Assembly: GCA_907165135.1 (NCBI GenBank)
Contig: OU015568.1
Coordinates: 3,224,001-3,288,000, forward strand
Direction: 5' to 3'
Length of the DNA: 64,000 bases
Source of the DNA: Oikopleura dioica
Taxonomy: Eukaryota > Animalia > Chordata
Every line of letters begins with the position of its first letter. Position 1 is the stretch's first letter. The notes under the pieces were generated by a model. That model had not been told where the DNA came from. It saw only the letters and a program-made list of their open reading frames with translations, and ran no database searches. A program made the translations under genes and the position numbers. Shown in pieces: positions 18,261-64,000 of the stretch.

Positions 18261-21200
18261 ATGTTGAGTTTAGCACTTTTGGCTGCTTCGGCTTCGGCCC
18301 AGTCTTATTATATCAACCAATATGGTCAGAGAGTTTACACTACAAATGCACGAAGCTCAAGCTGGTGGGACAACACTTACTCAAGAAACGGCGAAATCGT
18401 CAACCAGCCAGAGACTATTGTTAACTACATAGACAGGTAAATTCATCATTCTTTTATGAATATTTTGAGCTTCAAAGTTTTACTCTTCGGTTCATTTTCG
18501 AGCATTTTTTCCTAATTTTTTCTCTAGAATCATCGAAGAGCCTGAGCCTATCATCCGATACGTCGATACTGTCATCACTCCTGCTCCCACTCTTCCTCCT
18601 ACTCCACCTCCTCCATCCTGTCGCTGGCTCGACTGGGGTGCATGGAATGAATGTACTTCCGTCTGCGGCAAAAACACTCAATCCCGAATCCGACGATGTG
18701 AAGGTGGCCAGCCCGGTGTCAACGGCTGCTGCTCAGGCGATCACGATTCCTACAAATCCTGCTCCAACCCCATCCGAGAAGAACCCTGTGCTTACTGGTC
18801 CGGCTGGTCCGAGTGGGGTGCCTGCTCTACTTCTTGCGGCGAAGGATTCCGACGAAAACAGAGAACTTGCCTCGGCGCGGATATTTTGAAAGACGATGCT
18901 GACTGCCCCGGCCTTCCCTACAAAGAAGAATCGTGCACAATTGGAACCGGTTTGGGCGGATATCGAAACTGGGGCGCCTGGTCTGCCTGCTCAGCCACCT
19001 GTGGCGATGCAATTCGAACTCGCGAGCGGGGCCATACTTGCAACGCTGGAATTGAAGCCGACTCCGAATCATGCAATTTGCTCGCTTGCTGCGATCCATT
19101 GCCCTGGGCTGAATGGTCCGTTTGCTCCACTTCCTGTTTCATGGGCACTCGAACCCGAAAACACTCCTGGACATGCGACTACAAAGCCGATGTTGTCCAG
19201 ACTGAGGCTTGCAATGCTGGCGATGGTGTTTACTCAATGTGGTCCGAATGGAACGTTTGCTCTCAAACCTGCCTCGGCGGCGTTCAGAACCGATTCCGAG
19301 AACACACTTGCGGTCTCCGAGATGCCCGAGGAATGGCCTACGAACTTTCTCAAACCCAATCTTGCGGATCTGAAGGATTCTGGTCCGAGTGGTCTCAATA
19401 CTCGACTTGTTCCCAGACTTGCGAAGGTGGATTCATGAGCCGAACTCGACAACACACTTGCTCTCGAAAACTCGAACGCGATACTGCTTCCTGTGGCAAT
19501 CCCGGCGGATGGCGAGAGTGGTCTGAATGGTCTGGATGCTCGAGCTCTTGCTTCGGCGGCCAGAAATCGAGAAGACGAACTCACGAATGCACCAGCGAAA
19601 TCGATGTTGAACAGGCTCCTTGCGGCGAAGTCGGCGACTGGATGGCCTGGTCTGCCTGGTCTGGCTGCTCCAAGACTTGCCTCGGTGGCGAACGATCTCG
19701 ATCACGATTCCACGCATGCGGTGCTCAAGCTGTCCTTGCTGATCCATCCATCACTTCCGCCCGAGAAGTTCAAACTGAAGCTTGCGGCTCTGTTGGCACT
19801 TACGGTCTCTGGTCTCGATGGTCCGGATGCTCTGTCACTTGCGGTGGGGGAGTCACTACTCGCAACCGATACCATCAGTGCGACGGTACTACTGACACTG
19901 AAAACGCTGTCTGCAACGATGTCTGCTGCCCAGCCTGGAACGAATGGTCTCAATGGACTCCTTGCTCTGTCTCTTGCGGTCGAGGCGTTCAGAACCGAGG
20001 ACGAAACAACGTTTGCACTTCCATCGCCGATCAAGCCCAAACTAGAACTTGCTACGCTGAACTTCCTGACTATCCTTACGGCGCATGGGCTGAATGGTCT
20101 GTTTGCTCGAAATCCTGCCGAGGCGGTTCTCGATCTCGATCTGCTGAGCACATTTGCAACGCTGCTGGTATTGTGGATACTGAAGCTTGTGGCAATCCCG
20201 GCTTCTGGATGGAATGGTAAGATCTATTGAAATCAACAAGGACTCATTGATAATTGTCATTTTTTAGGTCTGCTTGGTCCGGTTGCTCAGTGACCTGCGG
20301 AGTCGGCATCAAAACTCGATCTCGACGAGATTCTTGCGGCGACAACTACCCCGAAACTGAAACTGCTTCTTGCGATGCTGGACCCGGCCAATACTCCAAC
20401 TGGGGAATCTGGGGCGCTTGTAACCAAACTTGTCCCGGCGGTGTCTCCCGACGATTCCAGCAACACAACTGCGGAGCTGAGCCACTCGTTGATGTCCGAA
20501 CTTGCGGTGAAGAGCGATGGGGCGCTTGGACTATGTGGTCTGCTTGCTCTCAATCTTGCGCTGGCGGAATCTCCACTCGAACCAAGACTGAATTCTGCTC
20601 CAATGAGGTTGTCCAAGAAACTCGAGAATGCGGTACTCCCGGTGCTTTCCTCAACTGGTCTCCATGGACTGTCTGCTCTCAAGAATGCCAAGGCGGTATT
20701 TCCACTCGACAACGGGCTCACACTTGCGATGCTGGAATTGAACAAGAAACTCGCACTTGCGGTCGACCTGGCTACTACTCTCAGTGGTCTTTCTGGACTG
20801 ATTGTCTCCGCGGCGGTGTCAAGGTCACTTGCGACGGTGGTAAACGATCTCGAACTCGAAACGGCTACTGTGGATTTGACGATGAAATCCAGGAACAAGA
20901 CTGCAACATGGCTGAGTGCTGCGATTTGACACCATGGACTGCCTGGGGAACTTGCTCTGTCTCTTGCGGAACTGGCTACGAAGCTCGCCATATTCAAGAT
21001 TGCAAGGGCCGAAATGTCCAGACCGAGCGACGAACCTGCAACATCCCAATTGTCTTCTACGAATGGACCGAATGGACTGGCTGTTCTCGAGAATGCGGCC
21101 CAGGTATCAAGCGACGAACTCGATCCGGCCCATGCACTGGCGTTGAAGAAGAAACCGCTCGATGTGACAACGGACCTTGCCCATTCTACGAACTCTGGTC

Positions 21201-23410
21201 AGCCTGGTCTCCTTGCGATGCTACTTGCGGCGAAGGTGTTCGAACTCGCCAACGAGCCTGCCGACACGGTGTTGCTGGAATTGACTGCGTCGGTGAAGCA
21301 TTCGAATCTACTGTCTGCCTTGCTGTCGATCCTGGCTTCACTCAATGGTCTGCTTGGACTGCCTGCTCTGCTTCCTGCGACTACGGCTTCAAATCCCGCG
21401 ACCGAACTCGAATCTGCACTGGCGAAGTCGACAGCGAAACCGTCCGATGCCTCGTCGATCCTGGCAACTGGTCTCCCTGGTCCGCCTGGGCTGGCTGCTC
21501 TGTCTCCTGCGGTGGTGGTGAAACTACCCGACAACGAGTTCACTCCTGCTCTGGCGAAGCTCAATTCCAGGAAATCAGCTGCAACACTTCTCCAGGTGTC
21601 TATCTCCAGTGGGGCGAATGGTCTGCTTGTTCTCGATCTTGCGCTGGCGGTAACAAGTTCCGAACTCGACAACACACTTGCGGCGGCGAAGATCAAGTTC
21701 AAACTGTCACTTGCGGCTCTCTCGGCGTTTACACCAACTGGTCCGAGTGGTCATCTTGCCCACGATGCTACGACTTCGGAGAGGAACCCGTTCTTGCTTT
21801 CCGACAACGAGGACATTCCTGCTCCGACATGGCTGAACAACAGGAAAAGACTTGCCTTGCACCTCGATGTGCTTACTGGGCTCAGTGGGGCGACTGGGGC
21901 GTTTGCTCGACCAGCTGCGGCTTGGGCTTCCGAGAACGAGTTCGAAGATGCATGGGCGATGATGCTGACTGCTTGAACCTCTTCGGCGACAAACGAGAAA
22001 CTCAATCTTGCGATGGCGGAAGCGGCCGAGACTTCGCCGGACAATGGTCTCCTTGCTCCACTTCCTGCGGCACCGGTGTTCAAACTCGCTCTGTGCAGAA
22101 CACTTGCACTGATATTGTCAACCAGGAACAACGCGCCTGCTCCAACAACCAGGGATTCTACTCTGAATGGTCAATGTGGTCTAGCTGCTCGGCTTCATGC
22201 GGCGGTGGCATGCAAACTCGACGAAAGACTCATAGCTGTGGCGAAGACGATTATGTTCAGGAGCGATCTTGCAACGTTGCTACTGGCAGTTACGGTCAAT
22301 GGTGAGTCATTGTCTTATATAATCTCAATTTTGAAATCAAGAAGGAAACCGAATAGATTTTAACTCTTTTCTCAGGTCTGCCTGGTCTGCTTGCCCAGTC
22401 AGCTGCGGCGGTGGCACTATCTCTCGAACTCGATACCACTCTTGCACTGGTGAGGCTGAGGTTCAGTCTACCACTTGCAACCAGCAACCATGCTCTTACT
22501 ACGGCGTCTGGTCCAACTGGGGCGCTTGCTCTGTCTCTTGCGGCCTCGGAACTAAATCCCGAACTCGGTAAGACTCACTCGTATCAACACAGATGATTAA
22601 TTTTCTTCTCTAGATACTGTATTGGTGGATCTGTCGGTTCCGGTCTCTGCAGCGACGATGATGTCACCACCGTCGACACCATCGCTTGCGACAACGTAAG
22701 AATCTTTTAGCAAAGCTCGATTCTAATTTATATTCTAGGGCGATTGCTGCAACTACCTCTGGTCTGACTGGACTGGCTGCTGCAACCACAACAACCGAAA
22801 CGTCCGACTTCGATTCCGAGGCGGTTGCACCGGCGCTGATCACCAGCAGGAAGAGAAGCCTTGCGGCACTGTTGGAGTCTCTGTTGAGGAGTGCTACTTG
22901 ATGATCCAGACTTATCACCAAACCGGCTACTTGGCTTATTCTTACAACACCACCGGCTACACTACCTACCAGCAGGGCACCGACTACATCACCACTTCCG
23001 CTAGCTACCGAACCTTCTACACCAACACCGGCGCCAGTGTCAACGTTGCCGGCTCTTACCAAACCATCAACGGTGTCAGCTACTTCGTCACATCGAACAC
23101 TGCCTACTACGGAAGCCAGTTCATGAGCGGATACTTCGACAACACTGGTCGATTCATCGAGAACAACAACAACAACACTTACTACGTCGGTGGCGGCACT
23201 TACGATCCCAACCTCGTCTACAACACTGGATCTAGCTCCAACACCTACAACACCGAACTCAAGTTGGTCTACTCCAACGGCTCTCCAGTTACTGTAACTG
23301 GTTACAATAACAACGGCGTCTTCTACACCCTGAGCTCCGAGCACTTCGGCACCATGTACGACAACGGCGCCTTCGACATGTCCGGCCGCTGGAATCCTTA
23401 CATGCCCTAG
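18261..23410 (+). CDS. Large secreted thrombospondin type-1 repeat protein (~29 TSRs) with Tyr-rich termini
   Basis: Signal peptide MLSLALLAASASA. Repeated WxxWxxCSxTCGxG...RxRxC units in ORFs 18886..20220 and 20254..22305 and later exons. Short GT-AG introns near 18437, 20218, 22302, 22568 and 22697. Tyr/Asn/Thr-rich tail 22898..23410. Confidence 0.9.
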
Positions 23411-25263: not shown

Positions 25264-28200
25264 ATGGCGGGGGATGAAAAACCTGAGCCATGGGACGCTA
25301 CGAAAAATATCGGTGAGTTAATGCTTACCCAAACTCTCATAAGTACAACACTCCTATTCAACCTTTTTTTCAGACGACCGACTTTTATTGAAGCAGCAAA
25401 AATGGCGACCTTATGTTGATTTCATTTTAAAATGCTTCTTTGCGCTTATTCTTTTCTGCCTCAATCTTGGAATTGATGTTCTGAGTCGGTCTCTTTTCTT
25501 GCTACTGTATGGAGACCATCAACTGTTAGTCAATTTGGATGATTTTGAAGAGAAAAAGAACGAAACAGAGTGCAATCTTCCGAGTAGAACCGTGGTTTTC
25601 GATAATTTATTGTATGTTATTCGACCATACAGGAACCGGCTTAGAGTTTTATTTAAAAGTTTTCTCCAAGCTTGTGGAGGTCATGTTGAACGTCATTTTT
25701 GTAGTTATCTTCTGAGCCGTGATAAACAGGATTTTCATGCTGACAGTGCCGATAATTTTGACCATAATAGGAGGGCTTTACCGGACATTTTTTCGGCTCA
25801 AGAGGCCGACCTTTGATCGTGCGATGGTCATTCATTCTGCTTATGAGCTTTTTGCTGGCGCTGTTTTGGCGTTTTTCGTCCTCAAAGTTGTCCACCACAT
25901 GCCCTACTTGGCGATTATTGCGATTTGTTACAGCGATAATTTGGTCACTGGATTTTATCAGATTCTCTGTCTGCTCAAGGTTGAATCTGGAAGACTGGTG
26001 TATCACCGAAATTCAGTCTTTGCCGAAGAATCATTCCAAAACGTCGACACTTATGGTCGCCAACTTGACCGACAAAGAACCAACAAATGCGAATTAACCT
26101 TCGTCTTGATTGGGTTTTTGCTTCAAGTTGCGTCCCTCGTCTTTGTTGGAATTTTAGGCATAGAATTTTTCGAAGGAATAAATCTCAACGACTGGATGCT
26201 GGAGGCAAGAGGATTTTTCTTGCTATTTTTCTTGGTCTTTACGTCTGGTCGTCACTGGATGACCTACCTGCCAGAAGTGAGCAAAAGCGCTTTCGATGCA
26301 TCAAATCAACGAGATGCCATGGCAGGAATCGACGTCTGCGCTGGGATTTTCAAAGCGATCGGCATTCTCATCCCCGCCCTGACCTTCATCTACATCCCTG
26401 ACGAAGAAATTGATCCCTCCATCATTGACGAGCGCCTTTGCTCCGCATTCACTACTTTTATTGGTTACATGATTGCTTTGTACATTGCCATTGTTTACGT
26501 CCAGCGCCACCTTTTGGGCCTTTCTTGTCAAATCCGCCTTCAATTTCTCTGTTTTTCTCTTCCAAGTCTTCTTGGACCATTGGTTTCCTTTGGAATTTGG
26601 TATAAAATGAGCTTCTCAACTGGACTTGGATTCGTCGAAACCGAGCTAATTTTATTCTTCAATAATGGAACGAATACCACGACTGCAACTTGCGAATTTG
26701 ATGTTCTCACGAGCCTGGATAATTTTCAAATCATCAATTTGCCCTCTGAATTCGTGCCGAACATCCCCTCATCCCTAACTGACCTGACAGAAAACACGAT
26801 TCTCGCCAACATGAATCTAGAGCTCATCGATCTCCTCTGGATCATCATCATCTCCGGTTTCGTCTCCAACATCATCCTCCTCCGCCATGTTTTCACAAAT
26901 CTCAACAACAAGCCCTACGCTAGAATCCGCGATCAATTCGTACACACGAGTTTTGAGCTCTTCAACATGCCCGTTCAGGAAATGAGTAACAGACGAGTCA
27001 AAGAGTACAACACGCTAGAAAAACTCAGCGTTAGCGATATGTCAGGCCATCCGCCGTACATTTTCATTTGCGTCCCACTCTGGCACGAAGAAGAAATTGA
27101 AATGGAGACGATGACCAGGTCGCTTTATCGAATGATCGAGCATCAGAAAATCAAGGCGAAGAGTGACCCAGCCTGCTACGAGCTAGAAGTTCATATCTTT
27201 TTCGATGCGCCATTCGAGAAAAAGAACTTGATGAAAAATCGCTCTGAAATCTACGATCGTGACATTATCGAATGGAAAGTCACAAACGAATGGGTCAATT
27301 GCTACATCAATGTGCTGAGAAAAATCGTCGATGGAAATGGAGAAGGCGATTGCTGGAAATTTGGCCAGGTTTATCCGACGCCGTATGGTGGCAAGATCGT
27401 TTATGATGTCCTTGGAACTGAATTTACGATTCATCTGAAGGACCCGGATAATGTCAAGAGGGGGAAAAGATGGTCGCAGATCATGTACCTTTACTATCTC
27501 TGTGGATGGAAAATGGACCAATGTCAGGAAAGTCGCAAAAAAATTCTTTTGAAACCTTATTAATTGTTAAATGACTTATTTATGCGCCTATTGAAAAGAT
27601 GACCAATTCAAAGGGCCAAAAGCTAAAAAAAGAAAACACTTACATTTTGGCGCTCGATGGCGATGTCGACTTCTTCCCAAATGACTTTGAATTAGTGCTT
27701 GCTCGGATGGTTGCTTCTCCGGATGTTGGGGCGTGTTGTAATCAAATTCATCCGAACGGATCAGGTACCATAAAAAGCGCCAGATCCGCGTTTTTTCTCA
27801 CCATCAATGAAATGAGTGTCAAAATTATTATTCATTTAGGACCGATGGTTTGGTTCCAGCGATTCGAGTACGCAGTTGGCCATTGGTTTCAAAAAGCGGC
27901 AGAGCATATCCTTGGCTGTGTGCTTTGCTCGCCCGGTTGTTTCTCTCTCCTACGAGTTTCAAATCTGATGAAGGATAATGTTATGGCTACATACAAAGGG
28001 ATCGCTACTGATGCCATGACAAAGCTCATGTACGATCAGGGAGAGGACCGCTGGCTCTGCACCCTGATCCTCCTCTCCGGCGGCAGAATCGAGTTCGAAG
28101 CAGGAAGTCACTGCCAAACCTTTGCTCCTGAAGACCCCGATACTTTTTCAAACAACGACGGCGCTGGGGACCAAGTACTTTTGTCAACATTTTCGAGCTC

Positions 28201-31200
28201 ATTTCCAACAAAAACATCGCTACGAAAATGAATCCTTATTTAACTTCCGCGTACATATTCTATCACATGCTTTCCATGTGCCTTTCGACTATTGGAGTGA
28301 CGACAACGCTCTTTGTCATTTGGGAAGGATTGGAGCTTGGGCTTGGGTCGGCCATAACGACGGGAGAAGCTTGGGCGCTGGTTTTCCTGCCTGTTTTGCT
28401 TTACGCGCTGATTTGCTGGAGAGGATCCGGGAAGAATCAACTTCTTTGGGCGAAGATTCTTTCAATACTTTATTCCATAATTATGGTCTTATTGATCGTC
28501 ACTGTGGCGATTGGTGTTAATGAATGCTCTTGGAACTTGACAGGATTGTTCATTCTCTTTCTGTCCGGAATTCATCTGGTCGCAGCGCTTCTTCACTGGG
28601 ACTTGAAGACGGCCATTTGCGGAATTATCTACTGGGTGGGTATTCCATTAAACTTCATATTCCTACAGATTTACATGATCGCAAATATCAACGATGTCAG
28701 TTGGGGAACACGATCTGCAGCAACAGGGCCCAAGAAAGAAAAGCTCACTTTCAAGCAAAAACTACGCGCTCTTGGGAAAAAACGATGGCCGGGCTTGAAA
28801 TTTTTCTGGAACTATTTAGTCAAGGGCGCCCCAGAAGGTATAGAAAAACCTGATGTTCCAGCTACGCCGCCAGTTGTCAGCTCCAGCAGCGAGATTGAAT
28901 CTGAAATGGACAAGAAGGGACCTGGAGATACTCCGGCTAGAAATGCGAGGCAATCTACTGTTGACTGGGCTACTGGGAACTTGATTGCGTTGGAGGAGGA
29001 TGATAAGTTTATTTCACCGTTTACAGTTCTTGGAGGAAATACGATTGCAGAGGCTAGATCAAGAGCGGGAATCGGAAGGAACAGCAATTTTCAACAATCA
29101 GTATACAGCGTTATGCAGGAATTGGATGAATAGATTTAAATAATCGGCAGATTTTTTAAGATCGAAATTAATGAATTTCGGCAATTTTGGCAATTAAAAA
29201 TTGATAGGCCTCATTTTGCATAAAAATATAGCGCAACATTTTCAGGGTGAAATAAGAATGTTCATCTCAGCAAAAGACAAGCGTAACCGCCCGCAAACGA
29301 TTACTACAAAAGACCAACTACAACATGCGGATGGCTCAAGACCTTCAGAAATTCGAAGCCCTCGCTGAGTCGCCAATTCAAGGTGATCCGGAGAAGATTA
29401 TCAAAGCTCTACAGGAGGAAGCAAAAACGACGATTCAGCTTAACGATGACACGAGGCCGCTTCTTGTCATGCGTGAAGTCGAAGAAAGTGCTGAAGCAGA
29501 GGAGGATGGTGAGGAAATGGAAAGCAAAGCGTTGGTCTATCGCTGGGTCAATAAAGAAATGGAGCAACGATTCATGGAATATTGCGCTTCGGACAAATTT
29601 TCAGCTTATGATCTTCCTACGATAAAAACGATTAGGGAACGAGAGTACAGTAGCTACAGAAAATACAGGGGCTTCAAAGAGTCACAAGGTTTTCCAGTTT
29701 TTCTTTCATGATCTCAACTTTTATTCAGGAATATGGGAAGACGGAAAATTCAATCCTCGGCCAGAAGAATCGCCGCGAGGAAAGAGCTCCTATTTGGACT
29801 GGGTTTTGAATATGCGCTCTCCGTTGTCCGACAAAATGAAGGTCTACGCTTTACCAGAAGCAGAACATGTTTTCTGGCAGCAAATGACTGCCCCTGGAAC
29901 GGGTTATCTAAGAGTGCCAAGCGCGGCGGAAGAGAAAGAAACGCGAATGAAAAATGATGAAATGGCGCAGCAGCTGACAGATTTTAGGTAAAATAAGGGG
30001 GACCATAATCGTGATTTCGACAAAAGTGTGTGGATTTTTCTCCAGCTAAAATTAAACGATGCGGCATCGTCGATGCCGAATATGCATATTACCTTTCAGA
30101 CGGGTCACGTAATGGGTAATCTACTAATCTCATAAATCTATTTCATAAATTGAAAATTCATAAACTTCATGAACATTCATAAATGAAAATTATTTTTCAG
30201 GAACAAAGTTGCGGGAGCGATGATTTTCATCAACATCCTCTTTTTTGTTTTCGCTCTCGTCATGAAACTACAAGGTGAGAATTCACTATTATAATTCATC
30301 GTTGATGAATCATCGTTACCTTTAAATTCAGCTGAACAGCTGCCCCCTGTCGAGTTGATCCTGCCCGTCGTTGCCGTAACCTGGGGACGCTATGATTCTG
30401 GATGTGACTGGATCAACTCTCAAGTACCAAAGGAGCTCAACCCTGAAAAATATCATATAAGCGCATCGAACTGTTCTCTTGAAGATACCGAAATAAGTCC
30501 ATTTTCTATCATTTATGATACACAGCAACTTATTCAACGTGAAGGCGAAGTAGAAAATTTTGCTTTTCAATGCTCTGACTACATTGCCGTGAGTAAAAGT
30601 CAAATTGAGGAAGAGATAACGAGAAATATCGTCATCTAAAATGATTTTTTCAACATATTTTTAGTCGCTGAATGGTTGGGATGAAATCGAACTCCGGCTT
30701 CCAATTTTCCAACTTTTCTTCCTTGTCCTCTACATTCTGCTTATGTCTATGCAAGTGATTTGCATGTTGATTCATCGATGGTCGACCCTGATGCACTACT
30801 TGGCCAATATCAGCTACAAATCCTTCCGGCTCGAGCTCAGTAGAATCAACGATACTAACAGACGTACGTCAATTCTTTTCTTTACCAAAAATCATTATTT
30901 TCAAAGAAATGGCGAGCATACGCGAAAACGGAGTGCACAAAGATGATAAACAATGGTCGATGGCTTTTAGGGATTTCGCCCTTGACTTGATGAAATTGAC
31001 CTTTGCCGTGAATTCGAGCGCAGGGAATGACGGAAATTCTCGGGAAGACAAATGGATGGAGCTTTACCGAAGGTAATTTCTTTTCAAAAGCAATGCTTCC
31101 CATTATTTATTCTCCAGAACAACTCATCGCGCGTTGGAAATGAACCCAGACATGCCGAAAAAGGGAATGTACCGCCTCTCAACACGAAAATCTCAAGCTC

Positions 31201-39240: not shown

Positions 39241-40261
39241 AATTTTTCTCTTTCTTCTTTATCAGAAATAATTTTTTCTCTACTAGAAAATCCTAAAAGA
39301 AGCCATTTTCATGGCTTAAACATTATGTCCGGAGTGTATTTTCGAAAATGTCATTCTTTTAGTGCGCTGGCCGGAATGTTATCACTCACTAGTCGGCGGG
39401 GGCTTAGCCAGCGGCCAATCGGTGAGTTGGAACCGGGCGGTCACAGCTCGCACTAGATCAATATTTCAAAAATGAGAAAATAAATAAGAAAAAATATGAA
39501 ATTTATGGAAACCTTCTGTAGGCTCTATGCTTATACAATATGAGTATCATTGATGATGATGCTAAAACCATAAAAAGAATATACAAAATGCAGTCAAAAC
39601 TATTTTTTTCACCAGTATAAAACTGATACTGTAAATGATTACATCTGCTGATAAATGAAGTCGAACTAAGAAGAGGGAGGAAAATTTTGGATATGAGTTT
39701 TTATTGGCCGGTAGGTCAAATACAACAACAAGCTAATTGGTCTTTCAAAAAAGCACTTCCTTTTCTTGGTTTGTGCCAATAATTCTTAACTTTATTTTGT
39801 TATCCATTTTTCAAAAACATCTGCAATAAATGACTTTTATTAAAACCTTCATCAATCGCCTTCTGTCTAAATACTTCAAAAAGCAAATCGACCTCGCAAA
39901 CTTGACAGTTTTAATTTCCGCTTACTCGTGCAATTTTCACATCACACTGGCAAATAGTTACCTAACGATGGTAACTCTCCCAAGACTCCTTGAATCCATG
40001 AACAAGTTTATACTTGTCTCTAAACAGCCGCTTAGCAGGTTCAAGTGCTCTTTTTGAGCAAGGAATGTTTGAATCTGGCCGGACAGGATTAAGGGCGTCA
40101 TATGATAGGGCAGAAGCAAGAGGGAAGATAAAAGAAGAAGAAAAAGTATCGAATCTTTATAATTATTGTTGCTTAGGAACGGATGTTCCATAAACGCCCG
40201 GGCTCGAATCCTTCTCACTCTCAAGATTACCACAGTTGTTCTTCAACAGAGAAAAGCTAAT

Positions 40262-42119
40262 ATGGGTTGCTCAGATTCAAAGCCAAAGGTTGAGGAGTCA
40301 ACAAAAGACTGCCCAAAAGATTACCCGCCAAATGGTCTCCCAGAGAGCATCAAAAAGCTGCCAGAGTGGATTCAGCTCGGTTGTGGTGATGCTGAGTACT
40401 ATTGTGAAGAGAAAGGCGCTGTTTTTAAACCCTCGGCGATGCCGGAAGAGTGCCCTGATTTGTCGGAACATAATAACTTTTTCTCGGAAGTGATGATCGC
40501 AAACCCAGAGTTGTATGGAAAACTGAGAGGCCTGACTACTTCACAGGTAAGCTCTCCAAAAGCATCAAAAATTTGCGATTAATTTGTTAATTTGCTATAA
40601 ATAGGCTGCTTTGGGGAGTTCGCATTGCAAAATTAGCTTTTTTGCATAATATTGAATTAATATTTCCACATTATGCCGTAGGATTTGAATAATTACAAGA
40701 GTTCTTGAAATTGAATTAAGATATTTGCCAATCAAATGAACATGATAATCAAAAATTCATTGGAAACGAGATTTGAATTCAGGGAGTCAACCTTGGTCAT
40801 TGCATCAAAACCGGAATCGACAACCCCGGTCATCCAATGATCAAGACCGTTGGCATGGTCGCTGGTGACGAAGAATCTTACACGCTCTTTGCTGAGCTCT
40901 TCGATCCAGTCATCTCCGGTCGGCACAATGGCTATGCTGCTGATGCTGTGGTAGGCTCATTATTTTCTTTATTTCTTTCTTATCATTTCTAGCACCCAAC
41001 TGACATGAACCCTGAAAATCTTTCAACAACGAAAATCGACCCAACTGGCAACTACGTCCTCACCACTCGCTGCAGAACTGGCCGATCAATTCGAGGATTC
41101 CGTCTTCCTCCATGCTGCTCTTTCGAAGAACGACGAGAAATCGAACGAGTCATTGTCAAAGGTATTCTTCTTTGATTTCAGAAAAAAATGAAGAAATTAA
41201 GGTCTTCTATCCTTGGAGGGTGAATTGAAGGGAGATTATTTCCCTCTTCATGGATCCAGATCTTACGGCCCGAAACCGACCGGAATGTCAGAGGAGAAAG
41301 AGGAATCGTTAAGAAATAACGGAAATCTCTTCCAGGTACGGTTATTTTGGAAAAAATTTCTTTCCCTTTTTCCATCTAGGAGCCAGACTCGACGCTCCTC
41401 CTCTCTTCCGGCTGCGGCCGACACTGGCCCGACGCCCGAGGAATTTTCCACAACGAAGCTGAGAATTTCTTCGTCTGGGTTAACGAAGAAGATCAAATGC
41501 GAATCGTCTCGATGCAGAAAGGAGACGACGTGGCCGCCATTTTCCGCCGATTTGCCGACGCCACCGAAGGCATCAAAAAAGTGCTCGAAGCGGAAGGCCG
41601 CGAGTTTATGCATAGGTTTGCAATTTTAACGATGATTGATTTTTGACAATTGTCTGTTTCTTAGCGACCATCTTGGGTGGATTTTGACCTGTCCTTCGAA
41701 CTTGGGAACTGGTTTGAGAGCTGGATGCATGGTCAAGGTCCCGCTCTTTTCTGCCAGGGAAGATTTCAAGGCTATTCTTGGCAAAATGGGACTCCAGGTG
41801 ACGTGTTAAAGGGGGAGAGACCCTTATTTTCTCTAGGCGCGAGGAGGTGCTGGTGTTGACTCTGAAGCAAAGGGAGGCATTTTTGACATCTCAAACGCTG
41901 ATAGACTTGGAAAGTCAGAAACGCAACTTGTCAACATTTTTATTGAAGGAGTCGCGCAAATTATCAGATGGGAGCAGGAACGGTTTTTAGCTCCGTCTTC
42001 GATCAGTTCTTCAGAAGAAATGTAAAGAAGGGATGTTTTAAGACCGTATAAAGGCCTTGGAAGCAGGAGAAGACATTGAAGAAGCTATTGCGGCCGCTGG
42101 ACTGCCTGAGAAATATTGA
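40262..42119 (+). CDS. Phosphagen kinase (ATP:guanido phosphotransferase), creatine kinase-like
   Basis: [89 protein letters not shown]. Confidence 0.93.
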
Positions 42120-47439: not shown

Positions 47440-48309
47440 ATGAAGATCTTCTCCCTCCTCGCAGTTTCTGCTCTCGGTCAATTCGATGAAGACGGTGTCT
47501 ACGACGGCGAAGGCTGGATGACGAACGGCATCGTCGAAGCTGATGAGAATGACTCATCACCACCCGGTCGATCGTTTGGTCTCGCCAGAACTGGTGATCG
47601 AGGCCTTCCAGGATCGAGAAGATACGCGGATCTCGAGCAGATGGCGAAGAGAACTTGGAAGAACGCCGGGTTCAAGAAAAAGGACAGGTTCGACAGTAGA
47701 AAGTACTGGGCCTACGGATGCCACTGCTATTTGCTCGGCGATCGACCTCTTAGTGAGATGGGCAAGGGAACTCCAAAGGTAAATTATATTGAAAGTTAAA
47801 GAGATAAAACTTCAAAATTTCAGGACGGTTTGGACAGCAAATGCAAGCGCTACAAAGACTGCCAAAAATGCGCCCGAGAAGAGTTTGGCGAAAGCTGCAT
47901 CGGTGAATTCGTCCAGTACACTTGGAAGTATTCCAGGAAGCAGGGCGATTTCATCACTCGAGATGCAGTTGGAACATGCGAAAACGCGCTCTTCCAGTGC
48001 GACAAGCAGTTTGTAGCGGATACTCTCGCCGTCAAAGACATCTTCGACGAACAGTACCACGCTTTCTGGGGCAACTTCGACAATCGAGACCCCGACAACT
48101 GCCCAAGCGGTGGTGGAGGAATTCCAGCGCCGCATCAGTGCTGTGGAGGAGACGGATTTCCTTAGTAAGTCGATTAACCACTTCTTCCTTTTCTTGAACC
48201 CTATTTTTCGACCTCTTTTTTATCCTTCTTTTCTAGCCAATGGATGAACGAAAACAGAAACAAGTGCTGCAACAACGAAGTCATCGGCATTTCCGACATG
48301 TGCTACTAA
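47440..48309 (+). CDS. Secreted phospholipase A2-fold protein lacking the catalytic His-Asp
   Basis: Signal peptide MKIFSLLAVSALG, YWAYGCHC...GKGTPK-DGLDSKCKRYKDCQKC, TCENALFQCDKQFV, and a Cys-rich tail. Confidence 0.8.
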
Positions 48310-49728: not shown

Positions 49729-52129
49729 ATGGATCAACGAGGTGATAAAAATATCGAGAATAGCACAGAAAATAAAATTTTTAGAATAAAATTCTCCGTT
49801 CTGAAAACGATCTTCTTGATTTTCGCGGCGAAGGGTTTGAGCTTGGCGATTCCTTTTTATTGGAAAGATCTTGTTGATTATCTAACGGGTAGGTTCTTTT
49901 GTTTGATGAAAAAATTGAAAAGGTCGTTAACCCGGATTCAGAAGAACAAACCTAACTTTCTGTTTACAAAATCTTTTTAGCAATCGACGAAAAAGATGTC
50001 ATCTCGACCGCCGAAACCCTTGCTGCTCTATCGACCCCTTTCGTCACCTATGCAGCCGTCAAATTGATGGAACCGACTATTGATCAGTACAAATCTTACA
50101 CCTTCGCCAAAGTGAAACAAAGCACAACGCGTAAAATTGGAAAAGCGCTCGTCGAAAAATTATTTGGACTTGATCATGCTTTTCACACTAATCGCGAAAC
50201 TGGCGCGATTTTAAAGGTACGTTCATTTTACATAATTTTCATGCAATATAAATATTTGCTCTCTTCCGAAAAAGAGGGAAGGAAATTGAATTAATTTCGT
50301 TTTCAGGCTGTGGACAGGGGAAATCGAGCAATAGCGACTGTTCTCCATGCGTTATGCATCGTCTTTTTACCGGCTTTATTTCAAGTAATTTGCACTGGCG
50401 GTTTTATTTGGTATTTTTGCGGAGCTGTCTATGCCTTGTCCCTCTTTCTTGCGATGTTTGTTTATGCGACCTTCTCAATCAAATACACCCAGGTAAGAAA
50501 TATTCTCCTACAAAAGCCACTGTAATTTTCCAGTATCGAACTCCCTTCCGAATCGCCATGAACAAAGCAGACATGGAAGCAGGCAATCTTGCAACAGACT
50601 CGCTCCTCAACTACGAAACAGTCAAGTTCTTCGCCAACGAAAAATACGAAACAGAACGATACGACGAAAAACTCGCCAAATTCGAGGAAGCCGCGTTGAA
50701 GACCGATCGAACACTGGCGCTCCTGAACATGGGTCAGTTGGCGATTTTGGCTTCGTGTCTCCTTTTCAACTTGGCAATGGTCGCCGGCGTCGTCGATTTC
50801 GGACAAGGATCGATTGCGAATGGAGAATTGACGATTGGTGAATTCGTGATGATGGCAAGCTATTTCCAGCAAATTCAACGACCGCTTTTCTTCCTTGGCT
50901 CGACTTATCGAGACTTGATTCAAGCAAGAACTGATTTTGACAGTATGTGGCGGCTGATGGAGCAAAATCCAGAGCTCGAGGAAGGTCCGAAAACTCTATC
51001 GGCCGAAAAACAACTCGACATTAAATTCAAAGACGTCCGCTTCGCCTATGGCAATGGCAACATCGTTCTCGACGGGGTCAACTTTTCCATCTCTCCCGGC
51101 GAACGAGTCGCAATCGTTGGTGGTTCTGGCGCTGGAAAATCGACACTGGCGAAACTTCTCTTCCGATTCTACGATCCGATTGAGGGTTCAGTTGAAGTGA
51201 ATGGGGAGGACATCCGAAACTTTAACTTGAAATCCTTTCGAGAAAATATCGGGGTGGTTCCTCAAGATTGCGGTAAGAAATCTCTTCATTCCTCTTTTTT
51301 CCACATTTTTCGGCATTTCATTTTTTTCTTTTAGTATTTCTGTCACGCTTTCTTGTCTAAACACTAGAATAAGCACTCAGTAGTCAACAAGAGAACCGGG
51401 TAAGTATCGTATGAAACTATAAACGTATTTTCATCCAGTAGTAACTATCTTCCAATCCCAGCTTTTGACGCGTTTCATTTCAGTTTTGTTCAACGACACA
51501 ATTTACAACAACATTCGTTACGGAAACCTGAACGCGACGGAGAATCAAATTATCGAGGCCGCGAAAGTCGCTGATCTCCACCGATCCGTTGCGGAAATGA
51601 AACAAGGCTACCAAACTGTAGTTGGCGAAAGAGGAGTCAAACTTTCTGGAGGCGAGAAGCAAAGACTTGCTATTGCGCGTTGCTTTTTGAAAGATCCGAA
51701 AATTGTAATCTACGATGAAGCAACAAGCTCGTTGGATTCTGTAACCGAACAGGTGAGATTTGCTTTCAAAAACCTTAGGTTATCTCGTTTCTAGCGCATT
51801 TTGGAATCGCTCGAAAAAGCCACAAAGAACAAATCCCTTCTCGTTATCGCTCATCGACTATCAACGATCGTCAAGAGCGACAAAATCATCGTCTTGAAAG
51901 ACGGAAAAGTCGCCGAAGTCGGCAACCATTTCGATCTCTTCGTCCTAAACAACCACTACAGAAAGATGTGGGATATTCAGTCGAATCAACAGGACACGAT
52001 AAAGAAGAAAGCAGTCGACGTACGCAAGCAACACATATATTTCTAGTTCATCTTTTCTTTCAGAAAAACAAATGCAGAAAAACGATCGAAAGAAGTCTCG
52101 AGAAAAAAGGCTGCTGCGCCAAATGTTAA
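49729..52129 (+). CDS. ABCB7: Mitochondrial ABC half-transporter ABCB7/Atm1; 5' end uncertain
   Basis: RETGAILK-AVDRG, DSLLNYETVKFFANEKYE, Walker A GGSGAGKST, signature LSGGEKQRLAIAR, DEATSSLD, IAHRLST, and C-terminal KGCCAKC*. Confidence 0.93.
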
Positions 52130-58497: not shown

Positions 58498-61400
58498 ATG
58501 AAGACTCGTAGAACGGCCGATGCCGAGGGAGATACAGATGAGCATTCGGACCATCATGATGATCAGACAAATCGCCGGTCCAACTACAGATCTTACGGGT
58601 AAATACAGTCATTAATCTCGAGAGTCATTTTATTTACAAAAAAGTGGTCGAAGTTCCGGGCGAAGAGAGCGAGTAACTCGTTCCCAAGTCATTGTCATCA
58701 ATTTGTCCGGATCAGAATCAGACGATGGCGGTCTTGGATCCTTAGCTCCCAAAAGAGAACGTCGGCATCTGCCTATTCGCTCCGTTCGCTCTAGAATCAG
58801 AAACAGTCAGTCAAGGAATGGATTCAAAAAGCCTTTATTTGCTCTTGGTTTCGCATCTTTTTTACCTCAAAAATCAAAGGAAATCATCAATTGAAAAAAT
58901 CATAATTTTGAAAATTTCTCGTCTCTAGAATTGGTCCCAAAAACCTGTTGTCTTATCAAGATTTCCCAAGAAAGTTAAAAACGCGGCAAAATGCGCTTGA
59001 GAGACCGGAATTCCCTCGGCGTTTTGTCGGAATTGACAAACTCGATGAAAAATATGAACTTTCCAAGTGACCGACGAAATTCTTTTGAATCCAATGAAAG
59101 CGGCCACAGCCTGCGCTCGCACTCGAGCAGACGCCATTCGCCGGCATCAGGTTATCCGCTTCGAAGTCGGGAATCAAATAGACGAACAAATAGCGAAGTA
59201 AAGGAAGAATACGAGGAGTATAACGGTAAGTTAAGACCTTTTCGGGTGATGCATGGAATTTTACTCTGTTTTTTTTCAAATTTGCTTATGAATGTCGGTG
59301 TTTTTGCATGATAACAGTGAGAATATCTTCAGAAACTCCAGAAATCAGCCTTGCCAACAATTCCGCCCACGACGAAGAAGACGATGAAGAAGAAATCCGC
59401 CGACCGCCTTCTCGCTCTCGTAAATCCCGAGTACGGCCAGTTCGCCCATCCGGTCTTGCTCGCGAACTCAACAATTTGCAACAACTGGCCAAGGAAAACT
59501 ACGGCAGCGATTTTGGTGAACAAGAAATGAGTCTTCACGATCGTGTCAAAGCTAGAAGCCGACGATCGCAAAGTATGCGGGAAGAAAGGCGGCGACAGGA
59601 GGAAGAAGAGCAGAATGAGGAGCAAATGGATGATGATGACGAGAATGGCGATGAAGATGATGAGGAAGGCGAAGAAGAAGAAGACGAGGAAGAGGAAGAA
59701 GAAGAGGAGGAGCAGGATCAGGAAGAGCACGGATCGCGATACCCACGAAGAACGCGTCGACAAAGAATCGTCCCGGAGCGCTACGGTCAGCAAAGAAAGA
59801 ACATCACGATTACACGATCATCCACACGGTCAGGTTCAAGACGAGCGCCAGAGATATCGATTCGTCGCTCCTCAAGCGCCCCGAAGAAGAATCGACAAGC
59901 ACGATCGTATCAGTGGGACTTTAGAAAGAAAAAAGACCGAAAGGTATTTACTCTTGAGACTAGATGCTTATATCTTAACCTAGTAGGTAGTACATATGTA
60001 GTAGGTAACTAGTAGGTAATGTAGTACATTAAAGGCGCATGAATCGGACGATTCCTCGTCAAGCAGCGACGAAGAGCATTTCCAGAAAAAGAAACGTCGA
60101 GAAATGGAGCGTTCCCGCAATACCATGCTTCCCATGAATTTGAACATGAAGGATGCCAATCATCGTCATGGATTCCGCGATCGGGAGCGAATCGGAGCTT
60201 CTCTCGCAGATGTGGATCCGATGGATTTCGACAAGTCCATCACCTTCTCCAGTGTGGGTGGTCATCCAGACGCGATAAGGCAGTTGAAAGAAATGGTCGT
60301 CTTGCCGATGTTGTATCCAAACGTCTTTGAAAAGTTTTCCGTTCAGCCGCCTCGTGGAGTCTTATTCTACGGCCCGCCTGGAACTGGAAAGACATTGATG
60401 GCCCGTGCGCTGGCCAATGAATGCTCACAAGACGGCAAGAAAATGGCGTTTTTCATGCGAAAAGGAAGCGATGTTCTCTCGAAATGGGTCGGCGAATCGG
60501 AGCGTCAACTCCGCCTTCTCTTTGACCAAGCTTATCGCATGCGCCCCTCTATCATCTTTTTCGACGAAATCGACGGCTTAGCCCCTGTCCGCTCGAGCAA
60601 GCAAGACCACATCCATTCATCCATCGTTTCTACCCTCCTCGCGCTCATGGACGGTCTCGACAGCCGCGGAGAAGTAATCGTCATCGGTGCTACCAACAGA
60701 GTCGACGCCATCGACCCTGCTCTTCGACGACCAGGGCGGTTTGACAGAGAAATTCTATTTCCCTTGCCAAGTGCTGAAGCAAGAATGCAAATTTTGAAAA
60801 TTCACGCGAAAAAGTGGGAAGCAAAACCAGAAGATAGCTTTTTCCGCCGCCTTTCGTTGAAAACCACGGGCTACTGCGGTGCTGATCTAAAGGCTCTCTT
60901 CACCGATGCTGTTTTGAACGCGCTTCGACGAACCTACCCAGCTGTTTATCGAACAACCCAGAAAATTGACGTCAACTTGGGAAACATCACCCCAGCAGAA
61001 GAAGACTTTGAAAACGCGATGAAGACGATTGTTCCATCAAGTGTTCGCTCTGATTCTTCCGCAGCTGTGCCCCTTGACGCTCATTGCAAGCCTCTTTTGA
61101 TCGGAAAGTTCAACGAGCTCTTGGAACACGTGGGCAATCTTTGGCCGCATGTCAAGCTCAAGAATTCCAGCTCGAATCGAACCGATAGAACTATTTTTGA
61201 CCAGCCATCAAGCTCGAAAGACGAGTTTCTCATTTTCGAACCTCGTTTACTTATAAAAGGGATGCCCGACAACGGACAAAATCTCCTTGCCCAAGCCCTG
61301 CTCGACTCGATGGACAGTTTCAAGATCATCAAGGTCACTCTCCCCGCCCTTTTTGCTTGCTCGACCAGAACTGTGGAAGATACCCTTGCTGAGATGCTGC

Positions 61401-64000
61401 GAGAAGCGTCCCGTGCTGGAAAAGCAGTTTTGTACATTCCAGATATTGACAGTTTGTGGCGCGCGTTGTCCGAGGTCTGCCGGGGCATACTCATTTCGAT
61501 GATCAAATCTATGCCTTACAGCCAACCAACTTATTTAATTTTTACATCGTCGGCAAACCCAAGCAGCATGAAAGATGATACTCCTAGTGAAATCACAGGT
61601 ATTCGAGAGAGTTTTTAGCGATTTCAAAAACAAGCTACTCCCTAACCCATTTTAGACCTCTTAAAAAGTCCAGACAATACCTACACCGCCGCGCTTCCAT
61701 CCTCCACTGAACTTACCAACTTCTTCGCCAAAATCAAAGACAGCTGCCTCATTGCTCCAAAGTCATTCGCCGCCGAAGCCCAAAACATACTAAAACCATC
61801 ATTTTACGTTGAAGTAAAAAAAGACGAAAAAGTCCTGACTCAGGAAGAAGTCGACAAAGTCGAGCAAAAAGAAGAAAGTACGATGCGAACTTTGCGCATT
61901 TTCTTGCGAAATTGCGTGACCATGCTTGCTAAGGACAGTCCTAGGGTCGGACTCCTTTCCTTTATTTTTTCCTTACTAAGGGTCCTTTTTCCTTAATTCC
62001 TTTATTTTTTCCTTACCCTTTTTCGGATTTTGAAGAAATAAAACCCTTTCCTTAATTCCTTTCTCAGTTTTCAGTGACCCTTAGTAAGGACCCTTAATCC
62101 TTAGTGATTTTTCCTTTTTTCCTTCCCTTACTAAGGGTTCGAGAAAGGATTTTTTCTGTCAACCTACGCACTTGAAAACCGATTCTTACGAAAAACCTTT
62201 TTAAAACCCTTAGTAAGGAAAGGGATTAAGGAAAAATTGCTAAGGAATCACAAAAAAATGACTTTTCCTTTTTTAAATCCTTACTAAGGAAAAAACCCTT
62301 TCCTTTATCCTTTGTCAGGTTTCAGAAAAGTCCTTAATCCTTTCCTTAGTCCTTTTTTGATTTTCCGCAATTTCGAAACCCTTACCCTTAGCGACTAAGG
62401 AATCCTTAGTAAAGGGTCCGACCCTAGGGACAGTCGTTTCAAAGAATTTGTCGGTAAGTTTTTCAAATCAAGTAAAGCCATGAAAACTGCCATAACGTTA
62501 CATAATTTCTGTAACACTCAATCTTCCAGACCCTGTCGACCCGGACGAGTTACCCGACTACCATGAAGTCATCAAGAACCCAATGGACCTGACAACGATG
62601 ATGTGCAAAATCGACGCGCACGAATACCAAACGGTCAAGGAGTTCCTATCGGATGTAAAGCTCATGTGCGCGAACGCACTTGAATACAATCCGATTACCT
62701 ATCAAGAGGAACGGATGATTCGCCACCGAGCGTGCCTGGCAGTCGGTATGTTTTTTTACTTGTTGAAATGATTTTTACATGGATCTTTAGATGTTGCACA
62801 TGAATATGTTGAGACCGAGCTTGATCCTGAGTTTGAGACTGTTTGCGAGCAGATCAAAGTCGCCAGAGCGCTCAGAGGAAGTGAAAAGTAAGTGAAAACA
62901 TCGACAAGCCACATGCAATTTCGCAAGAAGTTCTTGCTTCTTGTTCTTTTTCTTTATTCCGATCCCAATTTATAGGAAGAAATTCGCTCCAGACTACGTA
63001 GAAATCCCGAAAACGACGCCGGAAGAGCTTGCCGAGCAGCAGAATGAAATAAAAAACCGCGAAATCAAAAACGAGTTCGAAGATGGAGAAGAGATCTGGT
63101 GCCTTCATTCTGATGACAACAAGTTCTACATTGGCCGGCTGAATAGGACCAATCATGAAATGCATCCAGACGCGCCATTTTATGTTCATTATGTTGTCGA
63201 CATAACAAAGGTTTGCCTCCGTTACCTGTTAATGCCTGCTAAGTGATTTAACTATTAAGCGATATACTGTCTGGGCCCCCGCCTCTAGAATTCGCTACCG
63301 TCTCACCACAGACAACATCACAGACGTAAGCAAACTTCTGACAATTTTCGTCAGCATCAAGCTCATTTTAGAACGTAAAACTGACGATTTCAAAGCGAAA
63401 ACGAAAGCGAAAGTCGAACTGGGCGTCTGGAATCATTAAGCGCCGCTCCACCCGTAGATCTATGGTCGAGAACGATGAAATGATCGATGCGGATGAAACG
63501 ACGAGGGAGTTCGATGAGGAGACAAGGCAGAGCATGTTCGATAATTGCGAGAACTCGAATGACTCCAACAAAGGTAATTTCAATTTTGGGGATTCTTTCG
63601 AGGAGACTCTCAATTTTTCTTTAGAGAACGTTCCAGTTGCGCCAGTCGCAACCACTGCTCTCGAAGAAAAGCAACCGACTGTATCGTTTATGTCCACCCG
63701 TCGATCTTTCGAGCAATCCAAAATGGATGTCGACACACCGTCCACCACCAAAACAGCCACCAACCTTGACGCTTCCCAAAAACAAGCAACTCCCGAAAAA
63801 GCTGCTGAATCTTCCCCTGCTCCGTCAAAAAAAGTCAATCTGGAAGATATCTGGTCTGCTGAAGAACTCGCCTTGATCCGCTCCGAGGCTGAGAAGCAGC
63901 CAAAACCGGTTGAAATCGACGAGCACGCCCTAGAAAAGATCTTCCAAATGGCGGTCGATGTATCTTCAGGAAAAGTAGTCAAGGACGTGATGCGTGTGGG
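58498..64000 (+). CDS. ATAD2: ATPase family AAA domain-containing protein 2 (AAA+ with bromodomain); runs past the right edge
   Basis: SSSSDEEHF..LPMNL, GVLFYGPPGTGKT, FFMRKGSDVLSKWVGESERQLRLLF, FFDEIDGLAPVR, LRRPGRFDRE, and bromodomain LRIFLR..PVDPDELPDYHEVIKNPMDL..NALEYN. Confidence 0.95.
61941..62427. mobile_element. MITE (487 bp) inserted in the ATAD2 bromodomain exon
   Basis: 12-bp TIR CTAGGGTCGGAC/GTCCGACCCTAG, 8-bp TSD GGACAGTC (61933-61940 and 62428-62435), and internal CCTTACTAAGG/CCTTAGTAAGG repeats. Confidence 0.92.

Follow-up and report, generated by a model that had tools for sequence, protein, structure and literature searches.

A miniature transposon in the bromodomain exon of ATAD2 in Okinawan Oikopleura dioica, a probable damaging insertion allele

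The window considered here, meaning the whole 64,000-nucleotide stretch that was analysed, corresponds to positions 3,224,001 to 3,288,000 of OU015568.1 in the Oikopleura dioica assembly OKI2018_I69, NCBI GCA_907165135.1, to which it is identical at every position of the 15.5 kb compared, and the locus under study lies on the short arm of this pseudo-autosomal scaffold, which measures 17,092,476 bp (PMC8008620). This agrees with the species that the initial annotation had named. The downstream end of the window is occupied by a gene whose annotated protein in this assembly, P0285 of 1378 aa, is reproduced exactly by 14 exons, the annotated model ending 157 nt past the window end. Pfam places an AAA domain (PF00004) in the exon whose last base is 61598, and a bromodomain (PF00439) in 62530-62745; both the top named matches and the top solved structures are ATAD2 and ATAD2B, with vertebrate ATAD2 about 50% identical. 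Judged by this similarity and domain order, the host gene can be assigned to the ATAD2 family, which comprises an AAA+ ATPase followed by a bromodomain. The gene features that surround the locus are:

58498 to 64000, + strand: ATAD2 orthologue, continuing past the window (P0285 mapping; Pfam AAA and Bromodomain)
61599 to 61655, + strand: native upstream intron, 57 nt, GT..AG (P0285 mapping)
61656 to 62453, + strand: interrupted coding exon (borders from P0285 mapping)
62454 to 62529, + strand: native downstream intron, 76 nt, GT..AG (P0285 mapping)

The interrupted exon, which codes for the linker plus the first helix of the bromodomain, measures 798 nt with the inserted element and 303 nt without it, the two flanking introns both being in phase 1; the downstream one lies at a position shared with the Bergen gene and related lineages. 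In the crystal chain 7m98_A of the human ATAD2 bromodomain, residues 7-43 are matched by the residues that lead up to LAKD (TMRTLRIFLRNCVTMLAKD) and residues 52-120 by those of the next exon, so that the insertion falls within the bromodomain fold. Removal of the element together with one copy of the target-site duplication (TSD) restores the reading ...LAKDSRFKEFV.... All exons 3' of the insertion are wholly intact, a condition that for a very young insertion is uninformative either way.

The inserted element extends over 61941-62427 (OU015568.1:3,285,941-3,286,427 in record coordinates), comprises 487 bp with a G+C content of 36%, and displays the following parts:

61933 to 61940, no strand: left 8-bp TSD, GGACAGTC (exact 8/8 match with 62428-62435)
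61941 to 62427, no strand: MITE, a non-autonomous transposon with terminal inverted repeats (perfect TIRs, TSD, no coding capacity)
61941 to 61952, + strand: left TIR, CTAGGGTCGGAC (one of two matches in the 64-kb window)
62098 to 62246, no strand: internal 56-nt inverted repeat, with arms at 62098-62153 and 62191-62246 (repeat-pair detection)
62416 to 62427, - strand: right TIR, reverse complement of the left one
62428 to 62435, no strand: right 8-bp TSD, GGACAGTC (exact 8/8 match with 61933-61940)

The TIRs match perfectly at 12 of 12 positions and their arms extend to 18 nt with 89% complementarity. The 64-kb window contains the CTAGGGTCGGAC 12-mer just twice, the two copies being inverted relative to each other, against a shuffle expectation of 0.03, and at least two occurrences were seen in none of 100 shuffles; the bases just outside the GGACAGTC copies are unlike each other at either side. 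Internally, a palindromic motif of the CCTTACTAAGG type has 12 matches in the window, where 0.5 are expected, and all but one of them fall within the element, and the RNA of the element folds at -168 kcal/mol (z = -8.9), which is more stable than its shuffled versions. Searches for a transposase returned a longest open reading frame of 50 aa in the element and no Pfam match, and the Rfam and tRNA scans of the window gave no matches. The element is a miniature non-autonomous DNA transposon. A second copy was sought in the window and 10 kb beyond (74 kb in total) and none was found. The 26 matches to the TIR end in JGI metagenome contigs were set aside as chance, each being a single match that lacked both a second end and any further similarity.

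The ends of hAT transposons follow the consensus (C/T)A(A/G)NG. The 8-bp TSD suggests a hAT-like affinity, as no more than a lead, given that the ends begin with CTAGGG and that no transposase partner was found. Compared with that consensus, the motif TAGGG begins at base 2 of the element and not at base 1. The structure otherwise resembles the MITE insertion polymorphisms of hAT-like type, which are likewise short and non-coding, with TIRs, an 8-bp TSD and strong hairpin potential, and are present on some haplotypes only; the differences are (i) the CTAGGG ends, (ii) the failure to find a transposase partner, and (iii) the single copy in 74 kb.

With the element taken out, the restored exon aligns collinearly and without indel to its counterpart in seven other sequences. 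A comparison with other haplotypes and assemblies had been suggested by the initial annotation of this DNA, and an empty site was indeed found: in both Bergen alleles of O. dioica (CBY40264 = P0284 and CBY08628 = P0288; DNA L036 and L037), where the homologous exon is an uninterrupted 303 nt; in three marine-metagenome contigs and one sequencing-run contig from related lineages (L001, L002, L003 and L034), whose coding DNA matches the window at 74-75% identity; and in the transcript-like contig P0292. The alignments all break at 61935 and pick up again at the next exon, and the exon borders are the same in the empty-site sequences. As the Bergen alleles, the related contigs and P0292 all have an empty site, this sequence comparison identifies the insertion as the derived state, and the perfect ends and perfect duplication argue for a recent event. 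The Okinawa and Bergen ATAD2 proteins share 76% identity, a value that fits the deep split of the O. dioica lineages, dated at about 25 million years (PMC11067885).

The same codon boundary is occupied in a distant larvacean, as a separate observation: contig L004 carries a 79-nt intron (6930-7008) at LAQ/DKRF, readable only as GA..AG and with a 9-bp inverted repeat near its ends, and P0286, a spliced sequence from another larvacean, reads LAQDKRFKEF across that boundary.

The initial annotation's description of a 487-bp TIR element with an 8-bp TSD in the ATAD2 bromodomain exon is borne out by the 12/12 TIR match, the 8/8 TSD match and the seven collinear sequences. The same evidence bears on the reading of the element as an artefact of assembly or polishing, present on no real chromosome at this site. 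The assembly is Nanopore-based, and a 99-Mb draft was merged by HaploMerger2 into a reference half and an allelic half (PMC8008620), which leaves room for such an error; nevertheless, perfect inverted ends bounded by an exact 8-bp duplication are what real transposition, and not misassembly, leaves behind, the flanks are base-collinear with relatives, and an artefact is considered very improbable.

Translation across the element locates the first in-frame stop:

61994 to 61996, + strand: first in-frame stop on read-through, TAA (translation across the element)

A transcript that is read through would gain 18 residues before this TAA, the position of which the initial annotation had given correctly, and would meet 8 in-frame stops altogether.

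The initial annotation went further and proposed an introner-like intron gain in progress, in which the element is spliced out as a new intron, either (i) through a GG..AG intron at 61933-62427 that restores the coding sequence exactly, or (ii) through a GT donor at 61938 at the cost of 4 or 7 residues. On this reading ATAD2 would stay functional, and pairing of the TIRs would help. The frame arithmetic of the proposal is correct: exact removal of 495 nt is possible in nine registers, of which 61933-62427 alone combines an initial G with a terminal AG, and the GT at 61938 is in frame both with the AG at 62443-62444 (4 residues lost) and with the native acceptor ending at 62529 (7 residues lost). 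Its background also stands, in that 11-12% of O. dioica introns are non-GT/AG (PMC8008620), that GA-AG introns are frequent, and that transposon-derived non-canonical introns occur in another appendicularian, Fritillaria borealis, according to the summary of Henriet 2019 given in PMC11282704. Within the window itself, probable GA..AG introns are present, and the ends of the element are predicted to pair strongly in RNA.

The splice sites were scored with position-weight matrices from a reference set of 19 short GT..AG introns of the window, hand-checked or derived from the annotation, 10 of them from the annotated ATAD2 mapping and 9 from neighbouring genes. An automatic iterated intron finder was dropped after it drifted into false positives, as was a codon-usage exon score, which was dominated by a thrombospondin-repeat gene. 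In leave-one-out scoring, the real sites reach medians of 7.0 bits (donors) and 6.5 bits (acceptors), these scores being crude, as they come from 19 introns and place one real acceptor as low as -5.3 bits.

On this scale, all three of the proposed new sites look random: with its dinucleotide excluded, the GG donor at 61933 (TAA/GGACAG) reaches -4.8 bits, which is the 48th percentile among all G positions, the GT at 61938 lies at the 44th percentile among all GT, and the acceptor at 62427 at the 51st percentile among all AG; the acceptor at 62444 reaches the 84th percentile among all AG. The exact-restoring intron 61933-62427 has a joint score of -7.9 bits, compared with at least 6.6 bits and a median of 18.0 bits for real introns, and ranked 32nd among 79 frame-preserving, stop-free G..AG options in an earlier scoring with 18 introns. 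The sequence GGACAG lacks the rest of the donor consensus, unlike the non-GT donors of the window, CAG/GAAAGT in a chitin synthase gene and AAG/GAATGG in the annotated ATAD2 model, which reach the 98th-100th percentile. The proposed intron is also about ten times as long as the norm, 495 nt against 42-107 nt (median 46) for the reference introns. The sole canonical GT..AG pair that the duplication provides, 61938-62433, removes 496 nt and shifts the frame.

In the predicted RNA fold, both candidate sites are base-paired within the long stem formed by the inverted ends, although such pairing could draw distant sites together instead of hiding them. From these scores we infer that the element lacks usable splice signals of its own. 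A search of the protein collection for Okinawa transcripts found P0285 alone in its 90% cluster, and three protein searches returned no near-identical fragment. No second copy serving as an intron was found in the window and the adjoining 10 kb, or in the JGI metagenome contigs, and the hint-based annotation, which accepted a GA..AG intron in this very model, uses none of the junctions proposed. The claim of an intron gain in progress is thereby left unsupported, and the new-intron reading is regarded as unlikely; removal of the element at a function-preserving junction, exact GG..AG or near-exact with the aid of TIR pairing, would be improbable on these sequence data. The fallback that the initial annotation had offered, a disruptive allele, fits better.

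The public gene model, an AUGUSTUS prediction guided by RNA-seq hints from the laboratory culture (PMC8008620), passes the element by a different route:

61878 to 62399, + strand: annotated intron of 522 nt (GT..AG) that bridges the element (spliced mapping of P0285, exact)

This intron deletes 21 native codons (STMRTLRIFLRNCVTMLAKDS), which are identical or nearly so across lineages, and keeps the last 28 nt of the element as coding sequence, the annotated protein reading ...EQKEE-RILSKGSDPR-DSRFKEFV... across the junction; the Pfam bromodomain match accordingly starts at profile position 13 in P0285, compared with 7 in the Bergen protein and 2 in that of another larvacean.

A further reading takes such a junction at face value: cryptic splicing at 61878-62399 or 61878-62529 would be regular, within the Okinawa culture the allele would be common or fixed, and the product would preserve the AAA ATPase and most of the bromodomain without its first helix. 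The hint-based model uses exactly 61878-62399, the donor at 61878 is the top cryptic donor within the exon (5.8-6.4 bits, 97th percentile of GT), and 61878-62529 is the top-scoring in-frame junction of all. On the other hand, the acceptor at 62399 scores -2.1 bits, a random level that is below the nearby acceptor at 62414, and the public model is not evidence of splicing, because a predictor must invent an intron in order to pass 8 stops. The junction of the model might have RNA hints behind it, in which case the product would be regularly spliced but altered; that product would still be deprived of the 21 conserved residues, and this route is held to be unlikely.

The 5' end of this model is also in doubt: the annotated GA..AG intron 58816-59100 (285 nt) removes a segment, running from the ATG at 58991 (MRLRDRNSLGVLSELT...), whose match is the beginning of the Bergen protein; on this match, the true ATAD2 start is probably the ATG at 58991. 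The intron carries an 11-bp perfect inverted repeat near its ends and was considered as an older case of an element turned into an intron, which was rejected as the removed segment is conserved with the Bergen start and the fold is unstable. An annotation problem or an alternative 5' end is more likely.

The best explanation, to which we assign a probability of about 0.6, is that of a recent transposon insertion allele that damages ATAD2 in the Okinawa lineage. According to this explanation, a miniature DNA transposon recently entered the exon for the first ATAD2 bromodomain helix. Since the element appears to provide no usable splice signals, transcripts would be expected either to keep it or to be crudely rescued. 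An mRNA that retains the element would stop 18 codons in, losing the bromodomain and the C-terminus, with mRNA decay probable. Crude rescue could take two forms, (i) cryptic splicing from the exon donor at 61878, and (ii) skipping of the whole exon, which would be in frame and cost 101 residues, and both routes would lose the conserved helix. The allele would act as null or weakened, because the expected transcripts keep the stop or lose the helix.

Such a disruptive allele is possibly heterozygous. OKI2018_I69 derives from one male with a heterozygosity of about 3.6% (PMC8008620), which may carry the insertion on one chromosome only, and a normal ATAD2 copy may have existed in this animal, as the pseudo-autosomal region is diploid in males. 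The presence of the insertion in the reference would be accounted for by the merging of haplotypes from one heterozygous male, and the reference probably acquired it through the choice of one haplotype at a heterozygous locus.

The damaged-allele reading can be set against the known systems in which transposons give rise to introns. Introners were reportedly described by Huff in 2016 as creating introns in bulk. These elements have since been documented as transposons making introns in bulk in Micromonas, Aureococcus and others (Gozashti 2022, PMC9860276). The present case shares with them a TIR transposon with a TSD in a coding exon of a conserved gene of an aquatic eukaryote, the TSD holding both a GT and an AG. 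Two differences stand out: introners carry or co-opt good splice sites that allow removal in frame or with a few codons added, whereas here the TSD pair is out of frame and the candidates are weak, which in silico (sites at the 44th-51st percentile) falls short of competent splice sites with in-frame removal; and introners exist as many copies in introns, whereas here there is one known copy and none further in 74 kb.

The transposon-derived introns of Fritillaria are closer in their host, which belongs to the same appendicularian class, and also show TIRs and a target duplication at the exon borders, but they need the altered splicing machinery of that species, whereas O. dioica is described as having non-canonical introns of the G*-AG kind. 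Among the exact-removal registers of the element, 61937-62431 reads AG..AC, the commonest Fritillaria type; we know of no case of AG..AC splicing in O. dioica, and this register is treated as a coincidence. The exact-removal register GG..AG does agree with the O. dioica type. The GA introns of the window, however, display a strong consensus, the better-supported one being 71 nt long, as opposed to TAA/GGACAG and 495 nt for the candidate.

If the insertion is merely disruptive, it serves as a caution to users of the OKI2018_I69 reference and of its ATAD2 model, in both of which the copy of the gene is damaged by a transposon, the annotated ATAD2 protein being without a conserved bromodomain helix and containing transposon-derived residues. 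If the element is spliced, the locus would represent a rare dated birth of an intron from a transposon in an animal, in a lineage known for its loose splice-site rules, and, should function be kept, a very recent transposon-to-intron conversion for which the empty ancestral site still exists in sister lineages.

Five genes neighbouring ATAD2 within the window, each recognized by a Pfam match or motif, comprise introns of ~42-75 nt throughout. The genes and the introns considered here are as follows:

Window 18469-23407, thrombospondin type-1 repeat protein
Window 25716-29700, chitin-synthase-like gene
Window 40166-41650, creatine/arginine-kinase-like gene
Window 47440-48162, phospholipase A2-like gene
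Window 50252-51331, ABC half-transporter
Window 27528-27598, putative GA..AG intron, 71 nt (CAG|GAAAGT ... GAAAAG|AT)
Window 58816-59100, GA..AG intron of the ATAD2 model, 285 nt, from the public annotation
L004:6930-7008, larvacean intron, 79 nt, with GA..AG as the only possible reading

The putative intron at 27528-27598 probably links two chitin-synthase-like exons, and no frame-keeping GT..AG alternative with plausible splice signals was found at this position. The annotated GA..AG intron of ATAD2 carries a perfect inverted repeat of 11 bp close to both ends, and excises coding sequence for MRLRDRNSLGVLSELT..., starting at ATG 58991 and matching the start of the Bergen reference protein. 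The 5' end of the public ATAD2 model is probably wrong, or else an alternative 5' end.

Directly upstream of the interrupted exon, the native intron 61599-61655 follows the AAA exon; in two contigs of a related lineage (L003:99-2411 and L034:137-2551), the AAA exon and the homologue of the interrupted exon share one continuous open frame, of 770 and 804 aa, respectively, so that the counterpart of this intron is either absent or in frame without stops.

Nine registers would excise the element precisely, and one of them, 61937-62431, reads AG..AC, the commonest intron type reported in Fritillaria borealis; AG..AC splicing is not known to occur in O. dioica.

The L004 intron, from a more distant larvacean in Tara metagenomes (L005 represents the same species), lies exactly at the codon boundary occupied by the element in the window (LAQ|DKRF) and displays a GTTCAAAAA/TTTTTGAAC inverted repeat close to its ends. 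This intron may derive from a separate insertion into the same AG|G site, or the shared position may be coincidental.
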